64,000 bases of DNA, from the NCBI GenBank assembly GCA_964199315.1, contig OZ116709.1, forward strand, positions 5,766,001-5,830,000, given 5' to 3'. This DNA comes from Orbicella franksi. Its lineage: Eukaryota. How positions within the stretch are numbered: the first letter of the stretch is position 1; every line of letters begins with the position of its first letter. Both the position numbers and the translations under genes were made by a program. The notes under the pieces are model-generated. The model made no database searches and was not told where the DNA came from. It worked only from the letters and a program-made list of their open reading frames with translations. Shown one piece after another: positions 1-58,792 of this stretch.

Positions 1-168
1 CTCAGAGGAATATTGGAAAGATCCAACTGGCGACTAACTACCCAGCTATATCAGGGAAAAAGCCAAGAGATCGAAAGATTTTCCGTGGCCGGATAGCATG
101 TCTTCAGATTTACGATCGAGCATTGAATGGGAGACAACTCGGAGCTCTGAAAAAGAAGTGTTTCAGAG
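1..168 (+). CDS. LamG-like domain exon L1 (3' part only)
   Basis: Frame from nt 3: [14 protein letters not shown]...[16 protein letters not shown]...KCFRG; donor ag|gtttg. Confidence 0.85.

Positions 169-58792: not shown

Follow-up and report, generated by a model that had tools for sequence, protein, structure and literature searches.

The von Willebrand factor A (VWA) domains of collagen VI alpha-3, the matrilins, vWF and the mussel byssal protein PTMP1 belong to one subclass, marked by a metal-ion-dependent adhesion site (MIDAS) and a terminal cysteine pair, and occur in extracellular structural proteins. The MIDAS coordinates ligand carboxylates via a divalent cation, and these relatives are matrix VWA domains, several of which are collagen binders. 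SVEP1/Polydom, another described design, is a large secreted protein that joins VWA to a concanavalin A (ConA)-like jelly roll, a pentraxin, together with Sushi and EGF domains. Mosaic proteins of Ptychodera, Branchiostoma, Lingula and Nematostella carry a LamG module of the kind described below; among them are proteins called 'sperm receptor for egg jelly-like' or PKD-like, and some contain WSC, C-type lectin or VWA domains. The SVEP1/Polydom family is expanded in cnidarians, according to a paper on the Nematostella matrisome (PMC12549020). Here we describe a gene of the coral Orbicella franksi in a stretch of 64,000 nt (assembly GCA_964199315.1, contig OZ116709.1, positions 5,766,001 to 5,830,000 of the forward strand; hereafter the window), which encodes a long chain of LamG-like (Laminin_G_3), VWA and WSC domains.

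The window protein shares its VWA subclass with the collagen VI alpha-3 group, including the MIDAS and the terminal cysteines. It differs from that group in that no triple helix was found, VWA alternates with a LamG-like domain, every domain is strongly cationic, and the chain is several times longer. As in SVEP1/Polydom, VWA is combined with a ConA-like jelly roll in what would be a large secreted protein; however, no Sushi, EGF, HYR or CUB domain was seen, the jelly roll is Laminin_G_3 rather than pentraxin, and the domains form repeated arrays instead of single copies. The mosaic proteins were the best named relatives of the LamG module over the full exon (345–598 bits), but they carry one to five copies of it among other domains, have an isoelectric point (pI) of 4.4–8.0 compared with 11–12, and show no alternating VWA array. 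Literature and protein searches, which were of limited reach, yielded no characterised protein with the same architecture. Likewise, no paper describing the gene or its architecture was found in a literature search of limited reach that covered VWA, laminin G and WSC in cnidarians, the Acropora locus, Arg-rich proteins and spirocytes. What is new is the undescribed architecture of a giant modular matrix-type protein with an extreme, lineage-specific charge; the domains themselves are ordinary, and predicted fragments are present in NCBI as 'uncharacterized'.

Window positions 1–59,033 (+ strand) very probably hold the 3' portion of a single huge coral gene that is expressed and conserved, and whose product would probably be a secreted multivalent scaffold. 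The window contains 0 N, has a GC content of ~42%, and carries its long open frames chiefly on the + strand. An all-against-all comparison of stop-to-stop frames gave two big families (20 and 16 pieces) and one family of three, and Pfam names VWA, Laminin_G_3 and WSC. The spliced chain comprises 72 coding exons and 6,937 amino acids (aa; ~793 kDa) at window 1–59,033 on the + strand, from a coding sequence (CDS) of 20.8 kb with 0 internal stops, the sole stop being terminal. It holds 16 Laminin_G_3, 14 VWA and 3 WSC-like domains, after which come one basic and one acidic exon and, finally, a further LamG. A sequence-only reading of this DNA had proposed a beads-on-a-string LamG/VWA/WSC protein of ~7,000 aa, spliced in one frame from ~72 exons, and all of this was recovered; the domain order it gave was obtained identically from Pfam, self-clustering and exon borders. 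We concluded that the array of LamG-like (L), VWA (V) and WSC (W) exons is real and splices to one frame. The exons are as follows, with the supporting record in brackets (P0218, NCBI Gnomon model of Acropora digitifera; L007, L012 and L022, intron-less contigs described below).

1–168, +: L0, LamG-like, 3' end only as the exon begins outside the window, phase-1 donor (ortholog P0218 residues ~1990–2030)
267–296, +: Pro/Arg linker mini-exon (in P0218)
783–1424, +: L1 LamG-like, Laminin_G_3 (Pfam; 80% aa to A. digitifera)
2412–2477, +: Pro/Thr/Arg linker mini-exon (in P0218)
3200–3832, +: L2 LamG-like, GC donor
4293–4319, +: short linker mini-exon (in P0218)
4473–5012, +: V1 VWA, MIDAS degenerate, DACSEN (Pfam)
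5618–5701, +: Pro/Arg linker mini-exon (counterpart in A. digitifera)
6593–7207, +: L3 LamG-like (A. digitifera ortholog)
7954–8034, +: Pro/Arg linker mini-exon
8421–9062, +: L4 LamG-like (Pfam; L012)
9362–9403, +: linker mini-exon (L012)
9640–10188, +: V2 VWA (L012)
10648–10719, +: Pro/Arg linker mini-exon (L012)
10811–11446, +: L5 LamG-like, folded model pLDDT 92 (L012)
11833–11886, +: linker mini-exon (L012)
12593–13141, +: V3 VWA (Pfam; L012)
13728–13763, +: linker mini-exon (L012)
14433–15068, +: L6 LamG-like (L012)
15730–15792, +: linker mini-exon (L012)
16220–16771, +: V4 VWA (L012)
17214–17273, +: linker mini-exon (L012)
17852–18481, +: L7 LamG-like (L012)
18960–19034, +: Pro/Arg linker mini-exon (L012)
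19481–20029, +: V5 VWA (L012)
20862–20903, +: linker mini-exon (L012)
21073–21708, +: L8 LamG-like (L012)
22036–22110, +: Pro/Arg linker mini-exon (L012)
22488–23024, +: V6 VWA (L012)
23504–23551, +: linker mini-exon (L012)
24436–25071, +: L9 LamG-like, last exon in L012 (L012)
25218–25274, +: Pro/Arg linker mini-exon (splice logic only)
25940–26575, +: L10 LamG-like (splice borders)
26862–26963, +: longest Pro/Arg linker mini-exon, 33 aa
27956–28492, +: V7 VWA
28792–28827, +: linker mini-exon
29097–29732, +: L11 LamG-like
30370–30681, +: W1, fused Pro/Arg linker and WSC-like domain, below Pfam cut-off
31378–31434, +: Pro/Arg linker mini-exon
31548–32081, +: V8 VWA
32421–32447, +: short linker mini-exon, tentative
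32865–33497, +: L12 LamG-like
36950–36994, +: linker mini-exon after a 3.45-kb satellite-bearing intron (conserved in relative L049)
37325–37864, +: V9 VWA
38302–38622, +: W2, fused linker and WSC domain (Pfam)
39480–39770, +: W3 WSC domain exon, candidate acceptors 39480 or 39441 (Pfam)
40563–40619, +: Pro/Arg linker mini-exon
40800–41435, +: L13 LamG-like, first of three tandem L-k-V-k units (k, linker)
41895–41936, +: linker mini-exon
42153–42478, +: V10a, first half of split VWA, phase-0 donor
42955–43174, +: V10b, second half of split VWA
43733–43783, +: Pro/Arg linker mini-exon
44091–44726, +: L14 LamG-like
44976–45017, +: linker mini-exon
45132–45457, +: V11a (contig L022 starts here)
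45968–46187, +: V11b (L022)
46524–46574, +: Pro/Arg linker mini-exon (L022)
46858–47493, +: L15 LamG-like (L022)
47693–47734, +: linker mini-exon (L022)
47877–48202, +: V12a (L022)
48320–48539, +: V12b (L022)
48883–48942, +: linker mini-exon (L022)
49228–49553, +: V13a (L022)
50106–50325, +: V13b (L022)
51064–51123, +: Pro/Arg linker mini-exon (L022)
53592–53917, +: V14a (L007, L022)
54516–54735, +: V14b (L007, L022)
55836–55955, +: poly-Arg/Lys exon ('basic tail'), 39 aa with a net charge of +24 (spliced contig L007)
56643–56810, +: exon opening (P)WGKKRD, then Asp-rich acidic spacer (L007)
57106–57294, +: L16a, N-terminal part of terminal non-basic LamG (L007)
57957–58424, +: L16b, main part of terminal LamG, phase-1 donor 58424/58425 (Pfam; L007)
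58975–59033, +: last coding exon (AMYMQLSRHSEPLKKNNEI), stop 59031–59033 (L007)
59481–59625, +: 3' untranslated region (3'UTR) exon, borders approximate (blastn, L007 nt 1318–1458, 73.5% identity)

Each LamG, VWA or WSC domain follows a pyrimidine-rich AG acceptor and ends at a GT donor, both in phase 1. The donor after L2 is an exception, being GC at 3833 (AGAG/GCGAGT, the slash marking the border); it recurs in independent contigs from this species and from close relatives, and is GT in other relatives. A phase-0 intron interrupts each of VWA10 to VWA14, always at the same position. In nearly all gaps between domains there is a single short exon, rich in Pro and Arg and flanked by good splice sites, again in phase 1-1. 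A control count found 25 such mini-exons on the + strand in phase 1-1, compared with 0 in phases 0/2 and 0 on the − strand, and the exon pattern is therefore more than chance.

Both of the principal domain assignments scored above the Pfam gathering score. Laminin_G_3 (PF13385) was matched by the raw open frames at E 4e-16 to 8e-15 (53.9–60 bits, cut-off 27.6), and VWA (PF00092) at E 1e-25 to 3e-43 (V1, 90.8 bits; V3, 148.4 bits; cut-off 23.8). All 14 VWA copies align as one family, and 13 of them keep the MIDAS motif DxSxS...T...D and the end cysteines. The MIDAS T was read as GGT, or as RGT in V2 and V5, and the D comes from TDG; V1 is degenerate (DACSEN, MTTG). The closest PDB sequences to the VWA domains were collagen VI alpha-3 (E 7e-120, summed), PTMP1 (3e-38) and the vWF A domains. 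The WSC profile (PF01822, cut-off 27.8) was matched just above its cut-off by W2 (29.6 bits) and W3 (28.7 bits), over profile positions 2–68 of 82 only and with four cysteines per exon; a search of PDB sequences found no relative of the WSC exons.

An AlphaFold2 model of a LamG exon was nearly all-beta, with a predicted local distance difference test (pLDDT) of 92.1 and a predicted template modelling score (pTM) of 0.90. Foldseek placed it with ConA-like domains at probability 1.0, as a jelly-roll fold, and the best matches were the lectin-like HCN subdomain of clostridial neurotoxins, the mollusc shell-matrix proteins P86860 and H2A0M0, the TSPN domains of collagens XI and XV, and PTX3. The HCN subdomain (Toxin_R_bind_N) and TSPN domains matched with TM-scores of 0.7–0.8 and probability 1.0, but at 11–18% sequence identity, so only the fold is shared. 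A functional link to the neurotoxin was rejected, as the likeness is that of the ConA-like superfamily fold and nothing else of a toxin is present. A search of the ESM Atlas returned generic Laminin_G_3 clusters only. The modules had been called LamG/pentraxin-like; the LamG part of that name stands, whereas membership in the pentraxins does not, and the likeness holds at fold level only. The window LamG exons gave no match to Pentraxin (PF00354) at E ≤ 0.01, the A. digitifera ortholog gave a weak summed match with no single stretch passing, and the pentraxin signature H-x-C-x-S/T-W-x-S/T is absent from the 6,937 aa.

Evidence that the exons are joined in transcripts came from intron-less contigs. 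JGI metagenome records were scanned with the LamG profile, which gave 80 loci, mostly intron-containing DNA of the same or related corals. Only L012 and L022 among these were intron-less; L007 came from a separate protein-search look-up. L012, part of a contig of 16,425 nt (JGI Ga0099821_1127641), holds an open frame of 2,231 aa that aligns in one piece, at 84% identity, with residues 1,068–3,258 of our first spliced model, from L4 to L9. This frame crosses 20 predicted junctions and spans 11 domains and 10 linkers (Pfam, 5 VWA and 5 Laminin_G_3), and its insertions and deletions all fall inside linker exons. L022 (JGI Ga0099820_1518579) has a frame of 1,382 aa that runs from V11 to the C-terminus across 16 junctions (4 VWA and 2 Laminin_G_3 by Pfam). 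L007 (JGI 3300008029, 1,458 nt, ~91% nucleotide identity) aligns with the window in eight intron-less blocks across 7 junctions: V14a, V14b, the basic exon, the acidic exon, L16a, L16b (to 58,424), the exon 58,975–59,033, and the 3'UTR at ~59,481–59,625. The 3' gene model is thus tied to transcript-type contigs.

The basic tail, acidic spacer and final LamG that had been predicted for the 3' end were all found, colinear, in L007. The gene does not end at 58,792 as first proposed, because the CDS runs to 59,033 via a short last coding exon, to which the 3'UTR exon is added. A protein search with the last LamG found open reading frames that extend beyond a stop at 58,430 into a frame 550 bp downstream in the window. 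That stop was ruled out as the gene end by the spliced contig, with its phase-1 donor at 58,424/58,425 and further coding exon. Because L007 adds the last coding exon, the final model has 72 exons, 6,937 aa and a stop at 59,031–59,033. An intron seems to follow directly 3' of the stop (TAAG/GTAATA, window 59034–59480, with borders taken from the 73.5% identical alignment), and the 3'UTR is therefore apparently spliced.

The gene also continues upstream of base 1, as had been supposed: more L and V exons lie 5' in the A. digitifera locus and in a relative assembled from long reads. The 793 kDa encoded in the window are a lower bound for the protein, which probably has about double that mass. 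Two contigs of the same species, L024 (1–1798) and L059 (1–1948), are 99.5–99.7% identical to the window and reach 1.8–1.9 kb upstream of its first base.

The orthologs are scleractinian, in keeping with the cnidarian origin that had been proposed from the letters. On A. digitifera scaffold DF970692.1 the domains are colinear with those of the window at 70–84% aa identity, and DNA similarity ends at the exon borders. Over 1,581 codons the rate of nonsynonymous substitution (dN) was 0.167 and that of synonymous substitution (dS) ~1.8 (saturated), with dN/dS 0.09. Domain order is also unchanged in another coral, known from a long-read assembly (ENA ERZ25073780), in which the distance from the L3 ortholog to the terminal LamG is 53.5 kb, compared with 51.8 kb in the window. 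In that relative a frame of 1,296 aa with no Pfam match on record lies ~6 kb downstream of the gene (L003/L004 16858–20462, − strand).

To our knowledge few structural matrix proteins of corals have been characterised, and giant genes are routinely split by annotation; they therefore drop out of proteomic and single-cell analyses. The expectation that this gene would be fragmented was borne out in A. digitifera, where annotation spreads the locus over at least four neighbouring models on the same strand (940, 1412, 2691 and 1984 aa) and lists the terminal LamG as a separate gene of 120 aa (LOC107356248, DF971361.1) on a scaffold that also holds V and L exons. One break between models is a frameshift inside a LamG exon. 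At another, the acceptor in a linker exon was likely mis-chosen: it appears to be 1–2 bases off and leads to a stop. The 2,691-aa model, XP_015766254.1 (LOC107345043, 'uncharacterized protein'), is an ortholog with 8 Laminin_G_3 and 5 VWA domains, the same Pro/Arg linkers, a pI of 11.3, and a C-terminus that equals L0-L1-L2-V1; this Gnomon model joins the orthologs of L0-k-L1-k-L2-k-V1, including the predicted linkers. It differs from the window gene in being only a fragment, and the A. digitifera introns are much shorter. Word-index protein searches with this whole ortholog (P0218) and with the 702 aa at its C-terminal end gave nothing beyond collagens and one protein each from Porites and Ptychodera, since long coral models fall into clusters whose representatives are short open reading frame calls. 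In cluster look-ups the A. digitifera protein was the sole named coral member, the other coral matches being unnamed single-exon open reading frames (ENA, Logan). The corrected model can be used to re-map RNA-seq, single-cell and proteome data that now split the locus into several 'uncharacterized' genes.

The composition of the protein is extreme, with a pI of 11.9 and 16.2% Arg, 5.0% Lys, 2.8% Asp and 1.0% Glu. The first 6,643 aa carry a net charge of +1,214; each folded domain bears +20 to +41, and the linkers contribute +144 over 499 aa. This cationic body contains a single N-x-S/T sequon, compared with ~31 expected. The last 294 aa have 7 sequons and a net charge of −1, and the terminal LamG is neutral and more strongly conserved than the body. 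The LamG module has a pI of 4.4–8.0 in Ptychodera, Branchiostoma, Lingula and Nematostella, and of 11.3 in the A. digitifera ortholog; because it is acidic or neutral in the other phyla and basic in A. digitifera, the cationic state is, within this sample, a derived coral feature. Ordinary adhesion domains have thus been pushed to extreme positive charge and almost stripped of N-glycosylation sites, and the protein offers a test case of how folded domains bear a net charge of +35. Tryptic peptides of 7–30 aa would cover about 59% of the residues, and the idea that the protein is invisible to tryptic proteomics was dropped on that count. No transmembrane-like stretch was found within the 6,937 aa.

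Because of its domain types, disulfide-clamped beads, stiff Pro/Arg spacers and lack of a membrane anchor, we read the product as a secreted structural or adhesive scaffold. The protein would be secreted, and its domain beads would be clamped by disulfides and set on stiff Pro/Arg spacers. Cationic domains, MIDAS sites and lectin-type folds could jointly make it a multivalent binder or cross-linker, with polyanions (sulfated glycans, poly-carboxylates, acidic matrix proteins) and/or collagen as likely ligands, and its role would be that of a structural or adhesive scaffold, not of an enzyme or receptor. Candidate sites of action are the mesoglea, the mucus or surface coat, the calicoblastic or settlement matrix, and the cnidocyst. 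A putative proprotein-convertase site, RRRKRRM-PWGKKR/D (cut at the slash), lies before the acidic spacer and would free the C-terminal LamG; such a use of the basic/KKR junction is plausible. The gene would give a concrete handle on coral material that is unstudied, be it matrix, adhesive, mucus or cnidocyst content.

Several points weigh against this reading of gene and product. Secretion is predicted from the domain types, the N-terminus lying upstream of the window, and the function and likely ligands of the product are deduced from domains and charge. R-x-K/R-R motifs occur 38 times in the chain, and the proposed convertase site is therefore not specific. W1 reaches 21.6 bits, below the WSC cut-off of 27.8. 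That L007, L012 and L022 are transcript assemblies is judged from their lack of introns, and the junctions from L9 to V11 (25–45 kb, with all three WSC exons) were predicted by splice logic alone. A search of a more distant relative's genome (L003) recovered neither the basic nor the acidic exon, and L022 has ~135 extra residues between them (residues ~907–1040) with no counterpart in the window or in L007; the tail is therefore evolutionarily labile.

The scaffold could instead be a microfibril of mesoglea or basement membrane, like collagen VI or the matrilins, that binds collagen via its VWA domains and in which charge is secondary. The nearest VWA relatives (collagen VI alpha-3, PTMP1, vWF A3) and the fold match to the TSPN domains of collagens XI and XV suggest such a role. 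However, no Gly-X-Y run of six or more triplets was found in the 6,937 aa, so that the part in the window does not belong to the collagen VI family by this mark, and no such protein appears in the accessible part of the Nematostella matrisome paper (PMC12549020). Known VWA matrix proteins, as far as we know, show neither sequon depletion nor domains that each bear a net charge of +30 to +40; both features were counted against a microfibril, which we consider possible but somewhat unlikely.

Another candidate role is that of a cargo or structural protein of the cnidocyst (nematocyst or spirocyst), which would neutralise and condense the poly-anionic capsule matrix. Cationic charge, a carboxylate-binding MIDAS and a lack of N-glycans would suit dense packing of poly-carboxylates. 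The link is one of analogy only, however, and the part of the protein in the window holds no minicollagen-type Cys-rich domain; we regard this role as unlikely.

It is equally doubtful that the protein is a polycation of the surface, mucus or skeletal matrix, which might coacervate with acidic mucins or skeletal proteins or act as an antimicrobial. The LamG fold does match the shell-matrix proteins P86860 and H2A0M0, and proteins with VWA and Laminin_G_3 recur in shell proteome papers. No such protein, however, appears in the accessible part of the Acropora skeletal proteome paper (PMC4890752), and its share of tryptic peptides of suitable length means that it should be detectable if abundant, which argues against this role.

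The locus might also be a cluster of separate genes, or one locus whose internal promoters or polyA sites give mostly shorter products. All exons are phase 1-1, so that continuity of frame alone cannot separate one gene from many; NCBI annotates several adjacent genes in A. digitifera; and the transcript-type contigs span L4–L9 and V11 to the end only, not 25–45 kb. But single intron-less frames cover 11 domains with 10 linkers (L012) and V11 to the stop (L022), and the breaks in A. digitifera are a frameshift and a likely mis-chosen acceptor, not gene ends. The sequence-only reading had held that internal ATG or signal-peptide exons would betray such a cluster; no start exon, signal exon or in-frame stop occurs among the 72 exons, and its claim of a single gene is upheld by intron-less frames that cross 20, 16 and 7 predicted junctions. 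Separate genes are in our judgement very unlikely. A decaying or non-functional array of pseudogenised domain copies, as the tandem 2.77-kb L-k-V-k units (84–90% identical including introns), the lost MIDAS of V1 and the frameshift in one A. digitifera LamG exon might suggest, is largely refuted by the stop-free 20.8 kb of spliced CDS, the dN/dS of 0.09 with saturated dS, the domain-by-domain orthology across corals and the intron-less contigs in public assemblies, and we give it next to no credence.

If the single large gene is accepted, a bolder extension can be drawn, which we offer as speculative and improbable. With ~7,000 aa more upstream, the protein would have ~14,000 aa, more than 1.5 MDa and more than 2,000 net positive charges, and would be among the largest animal proteins. 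It might then represent a new functional class, a polycation built of folded domains, derived in corals from a module that was ancestrally acidic or neutral, which condenses a polyanion (the poly-carboxylate of the cnidocyst, or an acidic matrix at the calcifying or settlement interface) by electrostatics and MIDAS-carboxylate coordination.

Tandem duplication of a 2.77-kb L-k-V-k unit has lengthened the array in its 3' part, the copies being 84–90% identical, introns included. Three such units of ~2.77 kb each lie at window 40800–48540, and L10 (25,940) is 88% identical to L14. The number of repeats in this region may differ among coral species.

The introns also hold repeats. A satellite-like tandem repeat of 190 bp forms two arrays of ~4.6 copies at window 34417–36707 (71–73% matches) and takes up the greater share of the 3.45-kb intron that separates L12 from the following linker; because the same intron is only ~350 bp in the related coral L049, the satellite seems to have been inserted or expanded in this lineage. 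The intron from the linker at 23,504 to L9 contains a 147-bp tandem duplication (window 23640–23935, 2 copies, 86% matches), and the last intron of the coding region, which separates L16b from the final coding exon, contains a (GTT)n microsatellite (window 58740–58782). Past the end of the gene, at window 59650–64000, GC skew rises to between +0.09 and +0.14, and several frames of 60–110 aa occur on both strands.

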